Assembly: GCA_977017575.1 (NCBI GenBank) | Contig: CDRNVI010000156.1 | Location: forward strand, 62,001 to 126,000 | Direction of reading: 5' to 3' | DNA: 64,000 nt | DNA from: Paramoeba atlantica | Taxonomy: Eukaryota; Protista; Discosea | Part shown: positions 23,441-43,106 of the stretch, one piece after another | Layout: each line of letters starts with the position of its first letter | Position numbering within the stretch: the first letter of the stretch is position 1 | Translations under genes and position numbers: made by a program | The notes under the pieces: generated by a model | Seen by the model: the letters and a program-made list of their open reading frames with translations, nothing else | Databases searched by the model: none | What the model was told of the DNA's origin: nothing

Positions 23441-24091
23441 CAATCGAGGCGGTGGGCAGTGGGGAAAAACTGAAAGTGATTCAATGACCGTCTATTTGTG
23501 GTTTGGAACGCTGAAAAAAACTCCCAAAAAATCAAACGGGGCGGGAAATAATAACCGGTTTTCAAATAACTCCTTCCAAAAATAGTCAAAATAAACCCAA
23601 ATTGCCCAAATAAGAGAAAACGATAAACCCAAAGAAATGTTTTTTTCGGGGTTGTTTTTGTTTTGTTTTCGTTTTTTTGTTTGTCCGCTTTTTTTTCCTT
23701 TTTTTCCTCCAATTTCTCTCCAATAATTTCGTTCCATGGGTTCCTCTTTGAAATGGATGCGCACAGTTTGAAGTTGGTTGAGGGGCGCACTCAGAGACTC
23801 AACACCCTAGAGCGAGGAATTGTGGGATATCAAATGAAGTGAAGAGAGACGAGTGGGGGAGTTGGAGGAGTTGGAGGAGTTGGAGGAGAGGTTGAGACTG
23901 CAATGCTGGGGAGAAACACTTGAAATGAATCAAGTTGTTATCTTTCACAAATACATTCTTGATATTTTTCGCTCTGATAAAACTGTAAAAGGGGTGACCT
24001 ATTATTCTTGTCAAAAAACAGAAAGGAATAAAAAAAAACAAATGGATCACTCAAGAACCTCGGAGGCAACCGCACCACCAGAGGAGGTGAG

Positions 24092-24224
24092 ACCCCAATT
24101 GGATCAATGCAACTTCATTCAATAAATCAAGCACTTTCTGAGTAATTGGAGGACTCCTGCTTGGTTTCTCTCTCTCTTCTCTCTTCTCTCTCTTCCTTAT
24201 TTCCCTTTCTCTCTTCTCTCTCTA
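24092..24224 (+). pseudogene. Fragment of the kexin-like gene (exon 39356-39427 plus following intron) with a nonsense change
   Basis: ACCCCAATTGGATCAATGCAACTTCATTCAATAAATCAAGCACTTTCTG matches 39356 onward. GGG CAA is changed to GAG TAA, and homology runs into the intron (CTTCCTTATTTCCCTT...CTCTATTT). Confidence 0.85.
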
Positions 24225-27200
24225 TTTCTTCTTGTCTGTTGGTTCTGTTGGTAAATAAAAATGGGGACGTCCATTTGAACAAGGATTCTTCAAAATCCCC
24301 AACTTCTGACAAGAAGAACAAAAGTATTGTTGACAACCTAAACATGCAGCTCGATCTAAAGAATCTGCCTCAACGCAACATCGAGAACATTTTTCGATGG
24401 TCACTCCGATCTGATCATCTTGCACCGGAGAAACTGAAGAAGATTTTTTGTGGATCAGAGAACCTGATTTCTTCTTCTTCCTCTTTTCTGTTAAAAAAAT
24501 ATGAGTGGGAGAGAGTGGGTGGGAATCTTAAAAAAAAAAATGACCGACTGTTGTATTCTTGTCTGTTGGTTCTGTTGGTTCTGTTGGTTCTGTTGGTAAA
24601 TAATGATGGGCTCGTCCATTTGAACAAGGATTCTTCAAAACCCCCAACTTCTGACAAAAAAAACAAAAAGAATGTTGACAAACTGAACAGATTGCTCGAC
24701 TGAAAGAGTTTGTCTCAACGCAACATCGTGAACATTGTACCTTACATTCGAGGGTCACTTCCTTCTGACCTCCCTCCACTAAACAAGCATTGCGTACCAG
24801 AGAAGATTTCCTATTCTTCCTCTTATCTAAAAAAATAAATAAATATGAGTGGGAGAGAGTGGGTGGGAATCAATAAAAAAAAATGACCTGCTGGACTCCT
24901 TTTCTGTGTGAGGCGTTTTGGAGCGAAAATATCAGGATTCTCTTCCCCCAGTGGTAAAAGGGGGATATCAATGTACTCTTGTTTTACTGGAGTTCCTTCA
25001 ATGGAGGGATTCTTCCCATCCTCTCTCTGAGGTGTAGGAGGAGTTTTGGGAGCGAAAGGAGAGGCAAAGAATTGTGGAGAGTTATCAGGAAGGGTGTGAG
25101 AAGCGAGATTGGGGGTGTTTTTAAGTGAAGGGGTACGGGGGTACAAATCCAAAGATTTTTGATAACATGCATCCTATTCCATTTTCAATTCAGAAAAAAT
25201 CAATCTTTATGTGGGAAACAAAACAGGTCATCAGCATCACAAGGGGTGGATCAAAAAAAAAAGAGACCTCAGAGACAGAACGATCTTTCAACAATTGAAG
25301 TAGAACAGTTTTGTCAATTGTTAGTTTGAATTCATATTCGTAAGATTGGTATTTGAGGAATGATCTGATCGAAGATCCAATCTCCTATTCATCATACTCA
25401 TCAGAATAACTCTTTGAAAATAATAAAAATTGAAAAAAAAAAGAAGACCATCAGGTGTGACAAATTGATCTCACCAGTTTTTAATGTTGTTTGGTTTCCA
25501 TCATACAAATATCGAAGTTCCCGTAACTATTCACCCACAATTTAATATCATATTTAAGAATGATTTCTTTCAAAGATCAGATCCCCTCCCCCTCCCAAAA
25601 AAAACAAACCTTTGGACTCAACCAAGGAAGTAAAGGAGGTTCAGCAACACTCAGTGCATTTCGATATTCTTTGAAATTTCCTTCTGGTGACATCAGTTGG
25701 TCCAAGGTTTCAAACATTCTTTTGTGCTTTTTGAAAAAAAAAATATCAATTTTTTGATTTAGAAGGGACTCATTAAATCAGAAAAAGAAAAATAAACGCT
25801 GGAGCTGAGGTCAACCCACAATGGTTTTAATCGTCGAATAGGTGCTTGATTCAAACCACTCATAACTGCTGTTGCCCCTTCAAAATTGTTCATCTGTGGT
25901 TTAATAAAATAGAAACTATAAATTGTTTGTCGTTTTTCAGATTTAGTTTTTGTTTGGAGAGAGACAAAAAAAAGGGACCTTCCAAAGTTGTTTTGCTAAT
26001 TTGATGAGATAAACCAACATTGGACGACGTGCTGCCTCTTCACATGAAAGAATCGATTCAACAATGATTTCAGAGATTCGATTGAAGTTGTGTGTCATTG
26101 TCATCACATTTGGAGCTTTTTGATATTTTTCTCCTTTCTGGGTGAGTAAAAAAACAAAAAAAAACATCAATCAATATTTGAAAAACTAAAATGAAATGAA
26201 TCAATTAACCTCCCAAGCTCCATCATAAAACTCTGAAAATTGAAGATTTTGATAAGATTGAAACATAATTGATGTCAATGATTGTGCAAGTTCACGAAAA
26301 GTCCCATACATCATCAAATTTGTTCCTTTCCATGCCTATTTTTTGAACTGAGTTTCAAAAAAGAAGTTTCAAAAATCAAAATGAAAAAAAGAAACCAAAA
26401 TTTGTGAAAAAGAAACTTCCAAAGTGTTTAATAATGTTTTCATTCGACTATTGTTCTCATCAATTTAGGGGGTTATTGATGAGGGAAATAAGAGTAAAAG
26501 GGTAAAAAGAAAGATAAACCTTGCAACAGAAGGAAAGAATGATTGATAATATTTTCCACAGATCTTGTTCCAGAGTTGTAAAACTCTCACAATTTCTCCT
26601 TTTTTTGTCGTATCTTCTTCTTCTTCAATCATTTGTTCCATCTTTTCTAACAATTGAATCTGTGTGTGTGTGGGGAGGAGGAGGAGGAGGGGGAGATAAT
26701 AAATTGGTTGTGAGTCAAATTTGCGAAAATTGAAAAAGAAAAGTGAAAAACAGAAAAAAAATTAACTGGATCAATTTCAAATTTCTCAAAACCAACAAAA
26801 AAGAAATCTTTTTCTTCGGGAGACATCTGGAGTAAACATTCAACGATCTTTCCATACTCATCCTTTTCAAAAAGATGATCTGTACTACAAAACGAATTCT
26901 TCTTTGGGTGATGTATCACGTCACTAATCGTTTTTGATATTGGTGTTAAACCAAAAGAACGAAGAGAAGGACTTTCAGTTGGACTTTTGTAAAATCGGGG
27001 GATTGGAGATCGACAGAGTGCCTTTTGGCTTTCTCCTCCTGTTGTCTCTCCCATTGTTGACCACAATGGGCTCTTCTTTCTTGTTACGGGTTGAGTTTGT
27101 GAGAAAGAAACACTTGCAAAAAAAGTACGAGGAGAAGAGGGTGAGGGTGATGAGTCAGAAGAGGTCGAAGGCGACCGAACAGTAGTGGTGGATGATCGAG

Positions 27201-31349: not shown

Positions 31350-32002
31350 CGATCGTGGGGTGGGCGGTGGGCGGTGGGTTGCGGTGGGCGGTGGGTGGTG
31401 TGAGAAACCTAAAAAGTGAACGAATGACTTTTTGGAACGAAAATAAAAAATAAAAACGGAGAAACGGAAAAATAAAAGACCGAAAAAATAAAAAGTGGCG
31501 GGGAAAAAAACCTCTCACAAAGAAAAGATCCAAAATTGCCCAAATTTGCGCTCGTTGCCCAAATAAGAGAAAACGACAAATCAAATAAAGAAATGTTTTT
31601 TTCGTTTTTTTTTTTTTCTCGAATAATTTCTTTTGAATTTTGTTCAATGGGTTCCTCTTTGAAATGGATTCGCACAGTTTGAAGTTGGTTGAGGGGCGCA
31701 CTCAGAGACTCGACACCCTAGAGCGAGGAATTGTGGGATATCAAATGAAGTGAAGAGAGACGAGTGGGGGAGTTGGAGGAGTTGGAGGAGTTGGAGGAGA
31801 GGTTGAGACTGCAATGCTGGGGAGAAACACTTGAAATGAATCAAGTTGTTATCTTTCACAAATACATTCTTGATATTTTTCGCTCTGATAAAACTGTAAA
31901 AGGGGTGACCTATTATTCTTGTCAAAAAACAGAAAGGAATAAAAAAAAACAAATGGATCACTCAAGAACCTCGGAGGCAACCGCACCACCAGAGGAGGTG
32001 AG

Positions 32003-32117
32003 ACCCCAATTGGGTCAATGCAACTTCATTCAATAAATCAAGCACTTTCTGAGTAATTGGAGTATTCCTGCTTGGTTTCTCTCTCTTCCTTATTTCCCTT
32101 TCTCTCTTCTCTCTCTA
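32003..32117 (+). pseudogene. Second copy of the kexin-like exon/intron fragment
   Basis: Same sequence as 24092-24224 with the same GAG TAA nonsense change. Confidence 0.85.
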
Positions 32118-35100
32118 TTTCTTCTTGTCTTCTGTTGGTTCTGTTGGGAGATAATGATGGGCTCGTCCGTTTGAACAAGGATTCTTCAAAACCCCCAACT
32201 TCTGACAAGAAGAACAAAAATATTGTTGACAACTTAAACACGCAACTCGATTTAAAGAATCTGCCTCAACGCAACATCGAGAACATTTTTCGATCACTCC
32301 CATCTGATCACCTGGCACCGAAGAAACTGAAGAAGATTTTTTGTGGATCAGAGAACTTGATTTCCTATTCTTCCTCTTTTCTGTTAAAAAAAAATATGAG
32401 TGGGAGAGAGTGGGTGGGAAACATAAAAAAAAATGACCTGTACTCAGTCTTTTTAAGTCTTTTCTTGATGTTTTCTTTGTGAGGCATTTTGGAGTGGAAA
32501 TATCAGGATTCCCTTCCCCCAGTGGTAAATGGGAGATATCAATGTACTCTTGTTTTACTGGAGTTCCTTCAATGGAGGGATTCTTCTCATCCTCTCCCGC
32601 TTCTTTTACTTCTTCTTTTTCTCTTTTCCCTTTCTCTTCATCCTCTCCCTGAGGTGTAGGAGGAGTTTTGGGAGCGAAAGGAGAGCCAGAGAATTGTGGA
32701 GAGTTATCAGGAAGGGTGTGAGAAGCGAGATTGGGGGTATTTTTAAGAGAAGTCCGGGGGTACAAATCCAAAGATTTTTGATAACATGCATCCTATTCCA
32801 TTTTCAATTCAGAAAAATCAATCTTTATGTGGGAAACAAAACAGGTCATCAGCATCACAAGGGGTGAATCAAAAAAAAAAGAGACCTCAGAGACAGAACG
32901 ATCTTTCAACAATTGAAGTAGAACAGTTTTGTCAATTGTTAGTTTGAATTCATATTCGTAAGATTGGTATTTGAGGAATGATCTGATCGAAGATCCAATC
33001 TCCTATTCATCATACTCATCAGAATAACTCTTTGAAAATAATAAAAATTGAAAAAAAATAGAAAAAAAAAAGAAGACCATCAGGTGTGGTAAATTGATCT
33101 CACCAGTTTTTAATGTTGTTTGGTTTCCATCATACAAATATCGAAGTTCCCGTAACTATTCACCCACAATTTAATATCATATTTAAGAATGATTTCTTTC
33201 AAAGATCAGATCCCCTCCCCCCCCAAAAAAAAACAAACCTTTGGACTCAACCAAGGAAGTAAAGGAGGTTCAGCAACACTCAGTGCATTTCGATATTCTT
33301 TAAAATTTCCTTCTGGTGACATCAGTTGGTTCAAGGTTTCAAATGTTCTTTTGTGCTTTTTGAAAAAAAATATTAATTTTTTGATTTAGAAGGGACTCAT
33401 TAAATCAGAAAAAGAAAAATAAACGCTGGAGCTGAGGTCAACCCACAATGGTTTTAATCGTCGAATAGATGTTTGATTCAAACCACTAACAACTGCTGTT
33501 GCCCCTTCAAAATTGTTCATCTGTGGTTTAATAAAATAGAAACTATAAATTATTTATCTTTTTTCAGGTTTGAAGATAGACAAAAAAAAGGGACCTTCCG
33601 AAGTTGTTTTGCTAATTTGATGAGATAAACCAACATTGGACGACGTGCTGCCTCTTCACATGAAAGAATCGATTCAACAACGATTTCAGAGATTCGATTG
33701 AAGTTGTGTGTCATTGTCACCACATTTGGAGCTTTTTGATATTTTTCTCCTTTCTGGGTGAGTAAGAAAACAAAAAAACATTAATCATTATTTGAAATAT
33801 TTTTGTAAAAAAGGGGCAAGGGGAGGGGAAATCAATTAACCTCCCAAGCTCCATCATAAAACTCTGAAAATTGAAGATTTTGATAAGATTGAAACATAAT
33901 TGATGTCAATGATTGTGCAAGTTCACGAAAAGTCCCATACATCATCAAATTTGTTCCTTTCCATGCCTATTTTTTGAACTGAGTTTCAAAAAAGAAGTTT
34001 CAAAAACCAAAATGAAAAAAAGAAACCAAAATTTGTGAAAAAGAAACTTCCAAAGTGTTTAATAATGTTTTCATTCGACTATTGTTCTCATCAATTTAGA
34101 AGGTGATTGATGAGGGAAATAAGAGTAAAAGGGTAAAAAGAAAGATAAACCTTGCAACAGAAGGAAAGAATGATTGATAATATTTTCCACAGATCTTGTT
34201 CCAGAGTTGTAAAACTCTCACAATTTCTCCTTTTTTTGTCGTATCTTCTTCTTCTTCAATCATTTGTTCCATCTTTTCTAACAATTGAATCTGTGTGTGT
34301 GTGGGGAGGAGGAGGAGGAGGGGGAGACAATGAGTAAAATTTGCGAAAATCGAAAAAGAAAAGTGAAAAACAGAAAAAAACTAACTGGATCAATTTCAAA
34401 TTTCTCAAAACCAACAAAAAAGAAATCTTCTTCTTCAGGAGGCATCTGGAGTAAACATTCGACGATCTTTCCATACTCACCTTTTTCAAAAAGATGATCT
34501 TCACTACAAAAGGAATTCTTCTTTGGGCGATGTACCGCTTCACTAACCGTTTTAGATCTTGGTGTTAAACCAAAAGGACGAAGAGAAGGACCTTCAGTTG
34601 GACTTTTGCTAAATCGGGGGGTTATTGGGAGAGATTGACGGAGCGCCTTTTGGCTTTCTCTTCTTGTTGTCTCTCCCGTTGTTGATGACAATGGGCTCCT
34701 CTTATTCCTTGAGGATTGGGTTTGTGAGAAAGAAACATTTGAAAAAAAAGAACGAGGAGATAAGGGTATGGGTGATTCAGAAGAGGGTAAAGGCGACTGA
34801 GTCGTAGTGGTGGGTGATTGAGAGTGAGAGGATGAAGAAGGAAGAGGATTCAATAAGAGAGGTGCTACTTTTTTAGTGGGAGGAATTGGAGAGATAAGGG
34901 ACGAAAGGCGTGGAGAAGATTTCGTTTGAGAAGATGGCAGAGGGTCCTGGGGAGCTGGTTTGCGAGGGCTTTTGGATGGAGAGTCAGTCCCGAGTGGTGG
35001 GCATGATATGTGGTTGAGAATTGATTCGTAATCTGAGAAAGATTGGCTTCTTCTGCTCCGAGTCCGAGTGCTATTCCTGCTGCGATTCCTGTTGCTGTCC

Positions 35101-35150
35101 TTCCGTTTTAAAAGGAAGACCTTTGGCCCAGGACTTTTTCTCGACTCCAT
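32115..35150 (-). CDS. RasGEF with 1 C-terminal Cys7-His repeat, array copy 4
   Basis: ORF 34278-35150, CDC25 exons, and terminal ORF 32115-32771 with a single repeat ending PTEPTEDKKK*. Confidence 0.83.
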
Positions 35151-35559
35151 CGATCGTGGGATGGGGCGGTGGGTGGCGGTGGGCGGTGGGCGGTGGGTGG
35201 TGTGGGAAACCTAAAAAGTGAACGAATGACTTTTTTGGAACAAAAATAAAACAAAAATAAAAAATAGGGCAAACGGAAAAAAGTTGTCCGAAAAATAAAA
35301 ATGGAGAAACGAAAAAACAAAACAGGAAAAAACGACTTCTCAGAATCCAAAACTATCCCAAAATTGCCCAAATATGAGAAAAAGACTAACCCAAATAAAG
35401 AGATGTTTTTTCGGGGTTGTTTTTGTTTCGTTTTCGTTTTTTTGTTCGTGCGTTTTTTGAAAGGTTATTGAAAGGTTGATTGAAACAGTTTCTCTTCTTT
35501 CTCTCGCCACAGAAGAGAGTCAGCGCCCAGCCAAAAGAGAAGAAGAAGAAAGAAGAAGA

Positions 35560-37123
35560 ATGTTTTTATTGTTTGTCTTATTATTATTGAGCGGGTTTGA
35601 GAGTGAAAAGAAAAATGGGTCTGTTTTTGTTTTGGGGGATATTTTGAATGATCCTTTGTATTTGCGTCAGTGGCATTTTTTTTATTCCAATACTTTTGGC
35701 ATTAATGCTCAGGTTTTTTTTTATATTTTTATTTCTATTTTATTTATTCATTTATTCATTTTATTATTTTTATTTTTTTCTCTTTCTCTCAGTTCTAAAA
35801 TCAAAAACAAAAACAAGGGAGCTTGGCAATTAGGAATGACAGGACATGGGGTTTCGGTGGGTGTTGTTGTTCCTCAAGTTTCTTCTCTTAATTTTGGTTT
35901 CTTTTTTTTTTTTTAATTTTAATTTTATTTTTATTTTTCCTTGTGATTTTATTCCATTTGATTTTAAAACGATCTGATTTTTTTTTTTTTCGCCCCCTCT
36001 TTCTTTTTGTCTCTCTCCTCTCTCTCTCTTTTCTTCCTCTCTTCCCTCCTTTCTCTCTCTTCTCTTTCTTCTCTCTCTCCTCTCCTCTCTCTCTCTTCTC
36101 TCTCTTCTCTCCTTCAGATTTATCACATTATGAGCACGAAAGTTCTTTTGTCAGTCCATCGCAAGAAGGAGATCGCGAGTTTGCAGAGGAAGGAACTGGA
36201 AGTTCTTCTTTTCTTTTCCCTTTTCTTTTTCTCTCTCCTTTCTCTTTTGTGAGATAAAGAGAACTTCTTTTTATCTTTTTTTCTCTCTTCTCACAACAAA
36301 AAAAATAGTGGCGGCAGTGATTGCAGCAAAGGCTGGAAACCATTTTTGTAGTGTCGGAATTGCCTACCAAGGTCGCCTTTTCTCTTTTCTCTCTCTCTCA
36401 CTCTTTTCTCTCTCTCTCCCTTTCTCTCATTTTTTTCTCTCATTTTTTTCTCTCTTTCACTTTCTCTTTTCTCTCTTTGTCGCTTTCTTCAAAATCTGAG
36501 ATTATTTTTTATTTTTTAGCTAATTTAATTTTGAGAGAACTTGAGTTCTATAATGCTGTTGATTATAGTGGTTTGCATTTGTTTCTTCTCTTTCTTCTCT
36601 TTCTTCTCTCTTCTCTCTTCTCTTTTCTCTCTCCTATTTTTCTCTTCTTCTCTCCTTCCTTTCTCTTTCCTTCTACCATTTTTAATATTTTTTTGATAGA
36701 CGCGATCCCTGATGCTCTTGCTTTTTATCAGGTCCTCTTTCTCTCTCTCTCTCCTCTCTTTCCTTTCCCCCTTTTCTCTCCCTTTCTCTTTTCTCTTTTC
36801 TCTTTTCTCTCCTCTCTTTTCCTCTTTTCCTCTTTAACAAATAAAGCCATTTTATAGAAAGTCGATGTCAATTTTATTGGTTTATCTGTTCCTCCTATTC
36901 TAGGAATTGCCCGTTATGACGTTTATTTTTATTTATTATTTTTTCTTTTGTTTTTTCTTTATAAATTCATTATTATTTATTATTTTATTATTATTTTATT
37001 ATTATTTTTCATTCATTTTTATGATTATTTTTCTTTTGTTGATTTTTCTTTTCAGAGACGATTAAGTGCAATTGTTAATTTGATTACGAGGCTCGGCAGA
37101 TCAGTTTTCTTTTCTTTTTCTTT

Positions 37124-37154
<31 letters not shown>

Positions 37155-38924
37155 GTCTTTCTCTCTTTAATGAAAAATAATAGACTTTGGGAGGATTAAT
37201 AGTGGCAAAGGCTCCATCTGGTAATTGTAATTATGATGGTTTTATGAATGATTATGCGGTTTTCTTCTTCTTCTTCTCTCTCTCTCTCTCTTTCTCTTTC
37301 TCTTTTCTCTTTTCTCAACCAGAAAAACAGGTGATGATAGCAAAAGGAGTAAATAGAGCTGGAAAACAAGTTGATGATGTTTCATGTCCTGCTGTTCTTT
37401 CTACTGTTTCTTCTGACGTTTTCCTTTCTTTCTCCTCTTTCTTCTCTTTCTTCTCTTCTCTTTTCTTTTCTTCTCTTTCTCTCTTTATTTCTTTTTTCTC
37501 TCTTCTCTCTAAGTTTTATAAACAGCTGTTAACGACAATCGATGTATCTTGTACTGAAAAAACTCTTAATGGAACATCGGTTCAATTTTTCTCAGAATAA
37601 ATCCAGAAAGAAAAGAGAGAGAAGGAAAGGGGGTGAAAGAAAAGAAGAAAAGAGAAGAAAAACATATTTTAAAAATAAAATAAAATGAGAATAATAATAA
37701 GAATGAATAATAAAAGAAATAAGAATGAATGAATAATAATAATAGGGGGCAAGTGCGACCATGGCAGGAATTGCTGCTTTGATTTTAGAGGTTCCATTCT
37801 CTCTTCTCTCTCTTCTCTCTTCTCTCTTCTCTCTTCTCTCTTCTCTCTTCTCTCTCTCTCTTCTCTCTCTCTCTTTTCTCTCTCTCTCAAAAGCAATAAA
37901 AAAGGCAAACCCAAATTTAAAATGGCACGAAGTACAAGAAATTTTCATCGAAGCGTCTCAAATGATCGATGTTCAAGATCCTGGTTGGCAATTTAATGGT
38001 GCTTCTAAACCTTATCATCATCAATATGGGTTTGTTTGTTTTGTTTGTTTTGTTTGTTTTGTGAGAGAGGGGAAGGAGGAGAAAAAGAAAAAGAATAGAT
38101 TTTTTAAAAAAATATCTAAAAGAATAAAAATGAATGAATAAATATTAAAAATAAAAATAAAAATAAAAAAAAAAAATAAAAAAAAGATTTGGGCTTGTGG
38201 AGGCGGGAGATGCGGTAAAACATGCGATTTATTGGCCTGTTCCTACTCTCCGTCTTTATCAATCTTTTGAAAGGTTTTTTTTCAATTTTTTTATTTTTAT
38301 TTTTTATTTTTTTATTTTTTTATTTTTTTATTTTTTTATTTTTTTATTTTTTTATTTTTTTATTTTTTTATTTTTTTATTTTTTTATTTTTTTATTTTTT
38401 ATTTTCATTTATTTTCATCTTTCTTTTCGACTTTCTTTTCTCTTTCTTTCAAATAATTTTTTGTATGATAGTTTCACAAAGAGTTTCTTCATTCAAGATC
38501 ACGATCTTGCTTCTTTTCCTATTGCCGTCAGGTCTCTCTTTTATTTCTTTATTTATTTCTTTCTTATCATTTTCTAATATTTGTTTAATAGTAATTTCCC
38601 TCAACAAGTTCAACACATTGGGGTTTCTTTTCTTCTGTTTTGAATATCTTTTTGTTCTCCAATAAATAAACAAACAAATAAATAAACATATAAATAAATA
38701 AAAATAGGTATCAGTAGTGATAGAACATGAGAATCCTGGTGATCTTGAGAATATTTTATAAATAAATAAATAACTAAATAAATAATAATATAAATAAATA
38801 ATAACATTATTTTAAATAAATAATATAAATAATTTTAATAATTTTAATAAAATAAATAAAAATAGGTATCAGTAGTGATAGAACATGAGAATCCTGGTGA
38901 TCTTGAGATTACTTTATAAATACA

Positions 38925-38957
<33 letters not shown>

Positions 38958-40670
38958 AAAATAAATAAAAAATTAATTAAATAAAAATAGGTATCAGTAG
39001 TGATAGAACATGAGAATCCTGGTGATCTTGAGATTACTTTATATTCCCCGATGGGTACTGCCTCTTATTTTGCCCAGGTTTTTTATTTTATTTTAATATT
39101 TTACTTTTTATTTTATTCTTTATTTTATTTGTTATTCATTTTTCGTCTTTTTTTTTCATTTTATTGTTATTTTGTTTTACTAATACATGCCTTCCTAGCC
39201 TCGTGGGATCACAGGCAAAACAATGTCTTTGGAGGTTTTTTCTCTCTCTTCATCTTCTCTTATTTTTCTTTTTGATTTCTAATCCAACAAGCACTCTCTT
39301 CTCTCTTCTCTCTTCTTTCTTTTCTTTTCTTTTCTTTTCTTTTCGTTTTTCGCAGACCCCAATTGGATCAATGCAACTTCATTCAATAAATCAAGCACTT
39401 TCTGGGCAATTGGAGTATTCCTGCTCGGTTTCTCTCTTCTCTCTCTTCCTTATTTCCCTTTCTTCTCCCTCTATTTTTCTCTCATTTCTCTCTCTCTCCT
39501 TTCTCTCCCCTTCCTCCCCTTCCTCTCTTTTTCTCTTCTTTCTTTTCCGACTTTTCTTATTTTCTTTTTCAGATGAGATTCAAAAGAGTGATTGTGAGAG
39601 AACTTCAACTTCCGAGTTCGGCTCAAAATTGTTGTGCTGGACATTTGTGTAGGTTTTATTTTCTTTTCTTTTTTTTGTTTCTTTTTCTTTTCTTTCCCTC
39701 TCTTTTTCTCTCTTCTCTCTATTTCTAAAATTGAGGGGAAACAAACAGATTGCCACCAGAAGAAGATGTTCTTCTTGTTCTCTATCCATCAATGCAATGC
39801 TCTGCTGTGGAACAGGTTATTTTATTTTCTTATATCTCCCTCTTCTTTCTCTCCTTTCTCTTCTTTCTTTCTCCTTTCTGTCTCTCCTCTACCCCTCTCT
39901 TCTTCCCTTTTCTCTCTCCTCTCTCCCCCTTCTCTCTTTCTCAAAAAAAACATACAAAATAGGCGAATTCACTTGCACAAAACAATCCAGATTTAAAAGG
40001 GATTATTGTTGTGAGTGGAAATGAAATTGATGAAAGATTTGAAGAAGCTCTTCTTCCTTTGTTTGGTGTTTCTGCTCTTAGTAATTTGGTTTTGAATCAG
40101 AGAATTGGTTTTTTGTTTTGTTTTGTTTTGTTTTATTTTATTTTATTTTTATTTTATTTTCTTTTATTATTTATTTATTCTTATTTATTTATTTTTCAGA
40201 CATTGACCTTGCTGTTGCATTTCATAAAGAAACTTATGGACAAGTTTGATTTCTTTTTTTTCGTCTTATTTCTTATTGTCTTTCTTTTCTTATTTCTTCT
40301 TTCTTTTTCTTCTCTTTTCATTTCTGAACTGTGTTTGGGTAGTTTGGTCCTTGGACCTTTAAATCAGTGGCTCATTGGGGAGAACCTGCTGAGGTTCTTT
40401 TCTCTTTTCTCTTTTCTGTTTTCTTGTTTCTTTTTTCTCCTCCAATTCATTTTTAAATAATTAGGGAATTTGGACTCTTGTTATTCACGACAGTAGTTGT
40501 GGTGATTCTGTAAGTTTTTCCCTCTTCTCTTTTTCTTTTTTTTTTTTTCTTTTTTTCTTTTTCCCCCTTCCTTTCCCCCTTTCTTTTCTCTCCTCTCACC
40601 CCCAAAAAAAAAGGGATCAGCCTCGGAAATCTCTCTCGAAATTGGGTATGCAGTCCCGGACATTCCTTAA
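35560..40670 (+). CDS. Kexin/furin-like (S8B) subtilase homolog, predicted catalytically inactive; signal peptide, no prodomain, P domain interrupted by a PA-like insert, no TM anchor; about 25 exons
   Basis: NDPLYLRQWH, AWQLGMTGHGV, EGTGMAAVIAA..FCSVGIAY, GNCNYDGF, NGTSGASATMAGIAALILEANPNLKWHEVQ, HHQYGFGLVEAG. P domain: VQHIGVSVVIEHENPGDLEITLYSPMGT and WTFKSVAHWGEPAEGIWTLVIHD. All align collinearly with furin. Confidence 0.85.
37796..37885 (+). repeat. (CTCTT)n / (CT)n intronic microsatellite
   Basis: Visible tandem CTTCTCTCTTCTCT run in a kexin-like gene intron. Confidence 0.85.
38281..38405 (+). repeat. (TTTTTTA)n intronic microsatellite
   Basis: Long run of TTTTTTA/TTTTTA units. Confidence 0.85.
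38708..39077 (+). repeat. Triplicated P-domain exon start (38708, 38866 and intact copy at 38991) within (TAAA)n-rich intron sequence
   Basis: AAAATAG|GTATCAGTAGTGATAGAACATGAGAATCCTGGTGATCTTGAGA occurs three times; the first two copies break off into AT-rich sequence. Confidence 0.92.
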
Positions 40671-40876
40671 ATAAGATCTTAAAAAACATGCTAAAAAGAA
40701 AATAAAAAAAACTTAAAAAAAGAGTTCTTTTTTTTCGGGGTTGTTTTTGTTCCGTTTTCGTTTTTTTGTTCTGTCGCTTTTTTATATCCGTTTTTCGTTC
40801 TTTTTTTGGTTTGTCGCTTTTGTGTGTTTTGTTTCGTTTGTTTTTTTTTTTTTTTCTCCCTCACCCTCTTTCAAAT

Positions 40877-43106
40877 ATGAAAAGGTTTTTTTTTCTTTTG
40901 TATCCAAGAAGATTATTATTATGGGAATGACATTTTTTAACAAAAACAAACAGGACCCGTTTATCCAAAACGGGATCTTCTCCCTTGATGCCGAGGAGAC
41001 GCTCAAGCTCAAGACCGCGGTCGAGAGATTTGCCATCAGTGTCGACTGTGTCAGGGACATGGAAATTTCAGAAGTCCAAGACATTTGTCGATCCTAATCT
41101 ATGTGATTTAATGGAAGACGGTTCGAAAGCAATTCTTTTTTCGGAAAAAAAAAATGATTTCTGAACGATCAAACAAATTCTGATTTGAGATATTGATATT
41201 TGGTTTTGCAACAGCTCGGGAAGTAAGTCTTCCTTCAGATTCTCCACCAACGTATTCTTTAGAGAAAGCCAATGGTTTTTTTCTTTTTATTGACATTCGC
41301 TTTCATACAATCCAGAAAAAAAACTCAACTCTCTCCCACGACAGATTCTCTAATGGATGCTTTCAAAGAACTCGCCAAATTTCTGGACCACACGGAACCT
41401 CGAGGAGATCAATGGTGGAACACAAAATCGGATCCTTTGGAAAACATTCAACAGACAATCATAAATCTTTGTGATCGCCCAAACCTCATTTCAAGGTCAG
41501 ATTTTTCCCTCTTTCTTTGTCCAAGTTTTTTTATCGCCCCTTTTCTTCTTCCAGAATATCTCTCTGTTGTTGTTGAGATTTTTTGATTCAATCTCTTCTT
41601 TTTTGTAGTTCTTTGAAACTCTTGAAAGCGTTCGCTCTCTCAGTGATTCCCCAACAATCAAAGAAGTCATTACCTCCCCCAATGAAAGAAGAATCCCCAT
41701 TGAAAAAAGAATTAACCAAAACACTCCCGCCACGATCGTTATCAATTGGGGCTTTTGATAAGAATCTCCTCAATCGAGCTTCTTCAACCAGTCGAGGTTT
41801 TTCAACCCCCCAACCCACGAATCTGAGTGGATCAAACATTTCGGCACGAGCGAAGAGTGGCTCAAGCATTTCGGCAAAAAGAAAGAGAAAAAAAGAAAAA
41901 GGCGAAAAAAAAGAGAAAGAGAAGAGTGAAAAGAAGGAAAGAGAAAGTTCCAAACTAGTTCAAACCCAAGAACTTGTGCGGTCGAAAGAACGAAAAGTAA
42001 TCGCCACTCGCCATCAAGAACCAAAACAATCATTGAAACCAAATTCCAGGCGAATGCAAAGTGCCTCTCCAATGCTACAAACATTCGAAAGAAGCTTCTC
42101 CTCTCCTCCCCGTTCCTTGAATTGTTTTGATATCACTCAACCTCTGATCTCTCCCAAACTCGAAGAAGAAGAAGAAGAAGAATTATTGCTCTATCGAGTT
42201 GACTTTCGTGAAGCTAAAATTACAAAAGTTCTTGCTCCACTCGGCGGGAGTGGTGCTGTTGTCTTCTCTGTTGATGTGAATGGCCTTCAGTGCGCGATGA
42301 AAGAGTTTTCTTTCGAACGACAACGCTTGGACAAAGAACAATCAAAGAAATTCTTTGACGAGATCAAGATGGTAGAGAATCTTCGACATCCCAATATTGT
42401 TCGGTATTTAGGCCATGAGGTGCAACAAAATTCTGCAAGATTGTTTCTGACACGTTATGAATCAACCCTTCGAAAAGAGGTTCAACAAAGATGGGCGGAT
42501 GTTGAGAGTGATATCGACGACCCTTTTCGCCCTCGAGACATCGCTCAAGTAGTTTTAGACCTTTCTCGTGGCCTTGAATATCTCCATGACCACAAAGTTA
42601 TTCACCGTGACATCAAATCCGACAACATGTTTGTGAATTTCGACGAGAGAGGAAACATCAGGGAGGTTGTAATTGCAGATTTTGACACTTCCAAAATTCT
42701 CCTGACAGACCAAACAAAAACAACAATCGGAACTCCTTGTTACATGGCTCCAGAAGTGATTAATGCCAATTTTCTTGGATATGAAGGATACACGGTGAAG
42801 GCTGACATCTGGTCCTTTGGGATGATTATTTATGAGCTTTTAACTCTCAACCTTCCATATGCTGGTATTCGGGGTGGAGATATGAAAGCAGCTCAAGATA
42901 TTCGAGAAGGGAATCGACCTCCTCTTCCTTCACCAAAATCGAATTTACCTCGAGAGGAAGATCAGGACTCTTACAAACCTTTGATTGATTTGTTTTTCAG
43001 ATGTTGTTTGAAAGACCCAGAGAAAAGATTGGATGCTGGGTTCCTCGCAGAAAAGGCGGAAAAAATCCTTATGTCGCTTAATGTGACCGAGTTTTTTTCC
43101 GATTGA
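40877..43106 (+). CDS. Ser/Thr protein kinase with DFD motif and an uncharacterised N-terminal region
   Basis: ORF 41583-43106: LAPLGGSGAVVF, CAMKEF, FFDEIKM, HPNIVRYLG, IHRDIKSDN, IADFDTSK, GTPCYMAPE, KADIWSFG, R. Upstream exons start at ATG 40877 (MKRTRLSKTGSSPLMPRRR...). Confidence 0.88.

Follow-up and report, generated by a model that had tools for sequence, protein, structure and literature searches.

A probable secreted kexin/furin pseudoprotease without a prodomain in the amoeba Paramoeba atlantica

We analysed a 64,000-nucleotide stretch of the Paramoeba atlantica genome (assembly GCA_977017575.1, contig CDRNVI010000156.1, positions 62,001 to 126,000; termed the window) in which a 26-exon gene on the + strand, at 35560–40670, probably encodes a soluble, secreted, catalytically dead homologue of kexin and furin, a pseudoprotease kept for a non-catalytic role. 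The columns of the catalytic Asp, the catalytic His and the oxyanion Asn hold other residues and the prodomain is missing, which supports the pseudoprotease reading proposed in an initial annotation of the same DNA. A ribosomal protein L5 exon in the window matches the EukProt P. atlantica protein from MMETSP0151 at 268 of 268 residues, so that the source is P. atlantica or a form that cannot be told apart from it. Judged by its sequence, the protein would be an unusually diverged, soluble, intron-rich and Ser-keeping member of a dead furin-like family of P. atlantica.

Inspection of 35000–42000 and of the three forward frames revealed a eukaryotic gene with numerous short exons. Rebuilding the reading frame exon by exon yielded a coding sequence of 1821 bases (606 codons) free of internal stops, which runs from the first in-frame ATG at 35560 to a TAA at 40668–40670. 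Each of the 25 introns begins with GT, ends with AG and retains a pyrimidine-rich tract. The introns, 60–368 bases long, abound in CT-type simple repeats and contain 54% T and only 6% G on the coding strand. This very strong strand asymmetry is confined to the introns: exons contain 23% G, so that exon borders are also sharp changes in composition. The initial annotation had given the same start of the gene but an end near 37800, short of the rebuilt end at 40670, and its two splice sites (35897 and 36200) fall within 2 bases of the rebuilt donors (35897 and 36202). The model rests on sequence and homology, and several exons could also be read in another open frame. External searches used single exons as queries, with the joined translation reserved for the local frame check and for alignment to retrieved proteins.

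Homology to kexin and furin, also put forward in the initial annotation, is borne out at the level of the whole protein and of single exons. A profile built from seven triad-intact relatives aligns in one piece to residues 37–598 of the model (207 bits, E 3e-65), so that every exon is backed by homology and stands in the right order. In a local BLASTP comparison the model matches the relative P0021 with E 2.8e-45, and P0021 in turn matches solved furin across the catalytic and P domains (E 4e-81), which anchors the motif assignments to furin. Searched alone, exons 4 and 13 score best against solved chains of kexin and furin: exon 4 (36309–36371), which encodes the helix after the His motif with its conserved N and C-x-V-G, matches kexin 1ot5 with E 0.025 from a 20-residue query, and exon 13 (37905–38029), the best-conserved exon of the catalytic domain, matches kexin and furin chains and retrieves kexin-like proteins in a whole-library search. 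Among ten single exons submitted to Pfam, the P-domain exon alone was recognised: exon 17 (38991–39077), the core of that domain, matches P_proprotein (PF01483) with E 1e-6 and 29.2 bits against a cut-off of 21. The P (Homo B) domain directly follows the catalytic domain, and its C-terminal strands align as well. Together these matches indicate that the gene is by descent an S8B kexin/furin homologue, P domain included.

Within this framework, the residues required for proteolysis are largely gone. In the multiple alignment and in the seven-relative profile, the Asp motif in exon 2 (35818–35896) reads V-V-V-P-Q-V, and the D-D-G columns are V69-P70-Q71 (codons 35869–35877). The His motif, which straddles the junction of exons 3 and 4, reads E-E-G-T-G-M, with the H of H-G-T replaced by E102 (36189–36191) in exon 3 (36118–36201; donor GT at 36202). 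In exon 9 (37184–37258) the N of G-N-G is replaced by S203 (37217–37219) within K-A-P-S-G, and a deletion of 5–7 residues in the following loop precedes the conserved N-C-N-Y-D-G. The G-T-S-G nucleophile motif is kept; exon 11 (37526–37579) ends in N-G-T-S, and S263 occupies its last codon (37577–37579). The four motifs that had been reported from the letters alone (VVVPQV, EEGTGMAA, KAPSG and a retained GTSG) are thus all present where they had been placed, and the alignments confirm the proposed loss of the Asp, His and oxyanion Asn with retention of the Ser. Of the Asp-His-Ser triad and oxyanion Asn that characterize an active convertase, S263 alone is found. An alternative alignment could put the Asn of S-G-N at the oxyanion position; because it needs a two-residue shift of the upstream strand and loss of the whole following loop, we treat the canonical oxyanion site as apparently lost or at least rebuilt.

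The substrate-binding surface has changed along with the active site. Exon 7 (36858–36920) encodes S-V-P-P-I-L-G in place of the substrate-binding strand S-W-G-P-x-D-D-G, and the S1 Asp is gone. The columns of furin D154, D191, E236, D258, D301 and E331 (furin numbers being the chain index + 107 in the alignment of P0021 with furin) hold P, F, I, I or L, a deletion and V, respectively, and D306 is kept. We take Asp154 and Asp191 to belong to S2, Glu236 to S4 and Asp258 to S1, with Asp301 and Glu331 as ligands of the second calcium site. Most of the acidic S1, S2 and S4 residues of an active convertase are replaced, and its second calcium site is lost. The two prolines in the substrate-pairing strand would make it still harder for a substrate to bind in the canonical way, and basic peptides are unlikely to be bound canonically by these residues. 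Overall, the seven intact relatives share 83 invariant columns; the model keeps 49 of these (59%), and the 34 lost ones cluster in D-D-G, H-P, H, S-W-G-x-x-D-x-G, W-A-x-G-N-G and S-E. Retained elements include the ligands of the first calcium site (a conserved N and the Asp residues of N-D-P and of the P-D-L motif, which reads F-D-L here) and the four cysteines of both catalytic-domain disulfides; these cysteines, the calcium-site-1 ligands and the core glycines are preserved far above the overall identity of 28–33%.

The prodomain is equally absent. Exon 1 (35560–35712), identified by tblastn with P0019 and P0021 and by the profile, begins with Met and nine hydrophobic residues, the hydrophobic leader comprising residues 1–13 (35560–35598), and proceeds to the mature start N-D-P-L-Y...Q-W-H. 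The initial annotation had described direct passage from a signal peptide into NDPLYLRQWH within about 12 residues; the direct passage holds, and the distance is somewhat longer, with N-D-P-L-Y at residue 30, ~16 residues past the leader. Upstream, only 410 bases separate the ATG from that of a RasGEF gene transcribed divergently from the other strand, leaving no room for a prodomain exon, and the segment 35151–35458 has been copied together with the RasGEF tandem repeats, marking it as a shared divergent promoter region. Furthermore, neither D-[DSTG]-G nor H-G-[TS] occurs in any + strand frame of 35151–37200, with 35725–35775, a T-rich stretch of intron 1, masked or skipped in the motif and upstream-region scans, and a relaxed tblastn with intact relatives recovered the exons already in the model and no upstream homologous open reading frame. 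The proposed loss of the S8B propeptide is therefore upheld, and an exon restoring the prodomain, Asp or His, a possibility raised in the initial annotation, was not found in the + frames of this interval. The N-terminal S8 prodomain (PF16470) and self-cleavage site of an active convertase are missing from the gene, and the relative P0038 has the prodomain.

Compared with the kexin/furin convertases (MEROPS S8B; furin 1P8J and 4OMC; kexin 1OT5), the Paramoeba protein thus shares a subtilisin-like domain followed by a P domain in the same segment order, the N-D-P...Q-W-H mature N-terminus, the first calcium site, two disulfides and the G-T-S helix. It differs in lacking the prodomain, the Asp, the His, the oxyanion Asn, the second calcium site, the membrane anchor and the tail, in having most acidic S1/S2/S4 residues replaced, and in carrying a PA-like insert within the P domain. 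Single exons of the PA region gave no PA match in Pfam, being too short, but the insert aligns column by column with those of relatives whose insert scores as Pfam PA (P0038, 1.1e-6; a unit of P0002, 0.0038, under the cut-off).

How far the gene is maintained has to be judged against its divergence, and several observations weigh against a maintained, secreted protein. Its end branch in a quick maximum-likelihood tree, the longest there, measures 5.8 changes per column, compared to 1.9–3.0 for dead paralogs and 0.5–1.2 for intact proteins. Its 34 lost invariant columns exceed the 17–24 lost in other dead members, a pattern that fits relaxed constraint too. Library, word and metagenome searches recovered no close orthologue or paralogue for a ratio of non-synonymous to synonymous substitution rates (dN/dS), the spliced protein was not found in protein collections that included the P. 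atlantica MMETSP0151 proteome, and the signal peptide was called by eye. Together with gene debris nearby (truncated exon-17 copies and exon-19 fragments), the long branch, the lost columns and the missing transcript-derived protein would also suit an unexpressed or decaying copy under relaxed constraint that has not yet acquired a stop or a broken splice site. We consider such a copy unlikely. The sequence differs by ~70% from all relatives recovered, a depth at which neutral drift would have disrupted the frame repeatedly, yet 606 codons are open and 25 GT-AG introns are intact with their pyrimidine tracts; likewise, the cysteines, calcium-site-1 ligands, core glycines and 59% of invariant columns persist against 28–33% identity. 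A 2015 P. atlantica sequencing run, which we guess to be RNA, contains 14% of the sampled words of the gene stretch, where wholly exonic words make up 19% of all; these shares are compatible with a spliced transcript, although they give only a hint of one. Constraint on the gene is plausible but unproven, and we infer it from intactness because open codons, intron borders, cysteines and invariant columns would not be kept by chance at such divergence. The earlier statement that the gene is kept under selection accordingly has indirect support only, from a frame that is intact across 26 exons and 25 introns. The tree placed the gene in no supported clade and carries a long-branch warning; by branch length it appears to be the fastest-evolving known member of the dead-kexin family, and the very long branch suggests fast, possibly diversifying, evolution.

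A residual hydrolase is far less probable. Here Ser263 would work with Glu102, much as in the Ser-Glu-Asp serine-carboxyl peptidases (sedolisins), which also have the subtilisin fold; the Ser kept in G-T-S and the carboxylate at the His position speak for it. The S53 pattern, however, combines a Glu base with an Asp four residues later and an Asp in the oxyanion hole (PMC11593635). In the Paramoeba protein E102 is followed at +4 by Met106, the oxyanion column holds Ser rather than Asp or Asn, the loop after it is deleted and the substrate strand reads S-V-P-P; moreover, the nearest relatives conserve neither residue, showing G, R, W, Q, I or L at the His position and D, E or probably T at the Ser position. 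We therefore rejected a sedolisin-like Ser-Glu-Asp active site.

Least credible of all is an artefact of the gene model, in which the true transcript would use other or upstream exons supplying Asp, His or a prodomain: the sequence-and-homology basis of the model and its exons open in more than one frame leave some room for it, but all exons match the family profile in their proper sequence, neither motif occurs in the scanned + frames, the 410 upstream bases are promoter sequence in common with the opposite RasGEF gene, and metagenomic relatives described below show the same leader-to-N-D-P layout and exon borders.

The predicted pseudoprotease has dead relatives in the same genome. A contig of the same ENA assembly (L001) carries the dead kexin paralogs P0002 and P0037, of which P0002 is an intronless open reading frame of 3332 residues made up of a head-to-tail chain of five and a half dead kexin units (L001:5866–15864; ENA ERZ24900291 ctg3944l). 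Across the units of P0002 and P0037 the Asp is lost in all, the Ser is replaced by Asp or Glu in most, the His is kept in some and the oxyanion Asn in most. Like the window gene, these paralogs have no prodomain and no Asp, and they carry a PA-like insert with a C-C-x(3-4)-C motif that the alignment shows to be common only to the model and P0002/P0037 (C-C-x4-C in exon 20, 39573–39652). Most of them, however, keep an S-W-G-like strand and the Asn, whereas the window protein has lost both and kept the Ser; they are intronless and often chained in tandem, whereas the window gene is a single soluble unit with 25 introns on a branch two to three times longer. Intron density therefore contrasts sharply within one family, between the intronless multi-unit P0002 and the single-unit window gene. 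In that assembly L002 holds the locus of the window gene; it is identical to window positions 34761–41141, and a comparison for polymorphism gave no differences.

Searching with a paralog unit recovered full-length relatives in which Pfam recognises PA, P_proprotein and Peptidase_S8. One of these, P0038 of Physarum polycephalum (EukProt P000050), combines an S8 prodomain (6.7e-10), Peptidase_S8, PA (1.1e-6) and a P_proprotein match split in two with an intact triad and a C-terminal membrane helix, and is apparently an active kexin. Along with P0039, P0040, P0078, P0079 and P0122, it represents active amoebozoan kexins that carry the same insert in the corresponding place within the P domain and align with the window protein end to end; these retain a complete triad with the oxyanion Asn, the S-W-G-P-x-D-D-G strand, the prodomain (PF16470 in P0038 and P0078) and the C-terminal membrane helix, none of which the window gene has. 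Because P0038 has this layout with an intact triad, the PA-in-P arrangement would be ancestral and still active elsewhere in Amoebozoa, the Paramoeba proteins being its degenerate derivatives.

Losses of the same kind extend beyond P. atlantica. A 4758-base metagenome contig (L003; JGI 3300073655) bears two kexin-like genes in opposite orientation. Both are rich in introns, share the exon borders of the window gene and lack a prodomain, their leaders passing directly into N-D-P. At the Asp motif one reads I-V-T-F-Q-I and the other F-I-V-P-Q-A, which contains the V-P-Q of the window gene, and one of the two has Gly at the His position; layout and Asp motifs together imply that loss of the prodomain and Asp is older than P. 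atlantica. The search for orthologues with the same substitutions that the initial annotation had recommended recovered a shared V-P-Q in one of these genes and no close orthologue. A whole-library search with exon 13 gave 100% identity only to the unspliced genomic open reading frame P0001, the next match being 41–56% identical; a word search with P0001 returned P0001 alone; and a metagenome scan with the exon-13 alignment gave generic, mostly high-GC kexin-like loci and no orthologue.

These comparisons suggest a route by which the gene may have arisen. An amoebozoan kexin with a PA domain inside its P domain would be the starting point, and in its Paramoeba lineage the prodomain and the anchor would have disappeared, along with the Asp and His of the triad, the oxyanion Asn at its canonical place and the acidic residues of S1 and the second calcium site. 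The parts that hold the fold would have stayed: the P-domain sandwich, the first calcium site, both disulfides of the catalytic domain and the central helix that bears the Ser. Such a protein would fold without a prodomain, be secreted and not cleave peptide bonds by a serine-protease mechanism, and would be maintained for non-catalytic binding or scaffolding through its remodelled cleft, its PA insert or both, rather than through canonical basic-residue pockets. The binding function we purely infer.

Subtilases are the textbook case of the prodomain as an intramolecular chaperone, and a lineage that has shed both prodomain and catalysis while keeping its P domain, disulfides and one calcium site would offer a natural test of how this fold can become self-folding and of how a protease cleft turns into a binding surface. 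The added value of a single gene is modest: it points to active, PA-bearing kexins of Amoebozoa as the likely origin of the family and represents its most diverged form, with the Ser kept, the S1 site hydrophobic and the form soluble. More speculatively, and with low confidence, we propose that a prodomain-independent kexin fold may have been recruited in Paramoeba as a set of rapidly diversifying binding modules, secreted or displayed at the surface, in which the window gene would be the soluble, most diverged member, with a hydrophobic cleft in place of the acidic one to bind a new class of ligand. If true, this would provide a natural subtilase scaffold that folds without an intramolecular chaperone and serves as a repertoire for recognising prey, microbes or the Perkinsela partner.

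PCSK9, which the initial annotation had taken as its functional analogue, is a less fitting comparison than it first appears. It has an intact triad, requires self-cleavage and keeps its prodomain bound; it also has a Cys/His-rich C-terminal domain in place of a P domain and belongs to the proteinase K-like subfamily, not S8B. PCSK9 is a convertase-family protein whose binding of the LDL receptor needs no catalysis on the target (PMC10772138). The Paramoeba protein, in contrast, has neither a complete triad nor a prodomain, and its acidic S1/S2/S4 residues are mostly replaced; the analogy is not supported in the form given. Because of the same replacements, a role as a decoy for basic cleavage sites also seems unlikely. 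An analogy of principle, and of principle only, is offered by CspC and CspA of Clostridioides difficile, subtilisin-like pseudoproteases that act as germinant sensors (PMC7200643, PMC6636752, PMC12880746) and combine a subtilase fold and an incomplete triad with non-catalytic signalling or binding. They differ in being bacterial, of S8A type, without a P domain and intracellular in spores, and are not close relatives. In the literature searched, subtilisin-like pseudoproteases came only from C. difficile (CspC and CspA), and neither kexin pseudoproteases of amoebae nor a PA domain within a P domain were described there.

The remaining exons, all on the + strand, complete the domain map. In the catalytic domain, exons 5 (36520–36570), 6 (36700–36731), 8 (37056–37103) and 10 (37331–37417) are placed by profile alignment, exon 12 (37746–37790) encodes the helix after the Ser and exon 14 (38187–38273) the end of the domain. 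Exon 15 (38472–38531) opens the P domain, exon 16 (38592–38622) is placed by profile alignment and exon 18 (39199–39234) supplies the last P-domain strand preceding the PA-like insert. The insert starts in exon 19 (39356–39427), continues beyond exon 20 through exons 21 (39749–39815) and 22 (39963–40107) and ends in exon 23 (40200–40243). The P domain resumes in exon 24 (40343–40393) with W-T-F...H-W-G-E (P0019 tblastn, E 0.005) and proceeds through exon 25 (40465–40509) to exon 26 (40614–40670), which holds its last strand and the TAA. No stalk, membrane helix or tail was found downstream of the exon 26 strand. A candidate donor at 40646 might have lengthened the open reading frame, but we rejected this extension: the relatives end their P domain at the same place, and a motif of the next gene's promoter region lies at 40734.

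That motif is an exact 18-base sequence, TTCGGGGTTGTTTTTGTT, which has four + strand copies in the window (23645, 27697, 35410 and 40734) compared to 0.39 expected. Each copy is intergenic and lies 100–200 bases from a start codon; the one at 35410–35427 stands ~130 bases upstream of the ATG of the predicted pseudoprotease, within the shared promoter region at 35151–35458. The sequence may be a promoter or terminator element of the amoeba.

Fragments of the gene are repeated both within it and elsewhere in the window. The acceptor of exon 17 and its first 50 bases form a threefold tandem repeat (38661–39043; 77–91% identity) with exon starts at 38708, 38866 and 38991, spaced 158 and 125 bases apart. 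The first two units (38708–38758 and 38866–38916, both +) are truncated copies that end in a stop and have no donor, and the third unit alone is a complete exon. Separately, a ~130-base piece comprising exon 19 and the start of intron 19 (39354–39480) has been copied at 24090–24232 and 32001–32125 with 85–87% identity; the rest of the gene is not copied. Both fragments lie within the RasGEF tandem repeats, and a stop interrupts their exon frame.

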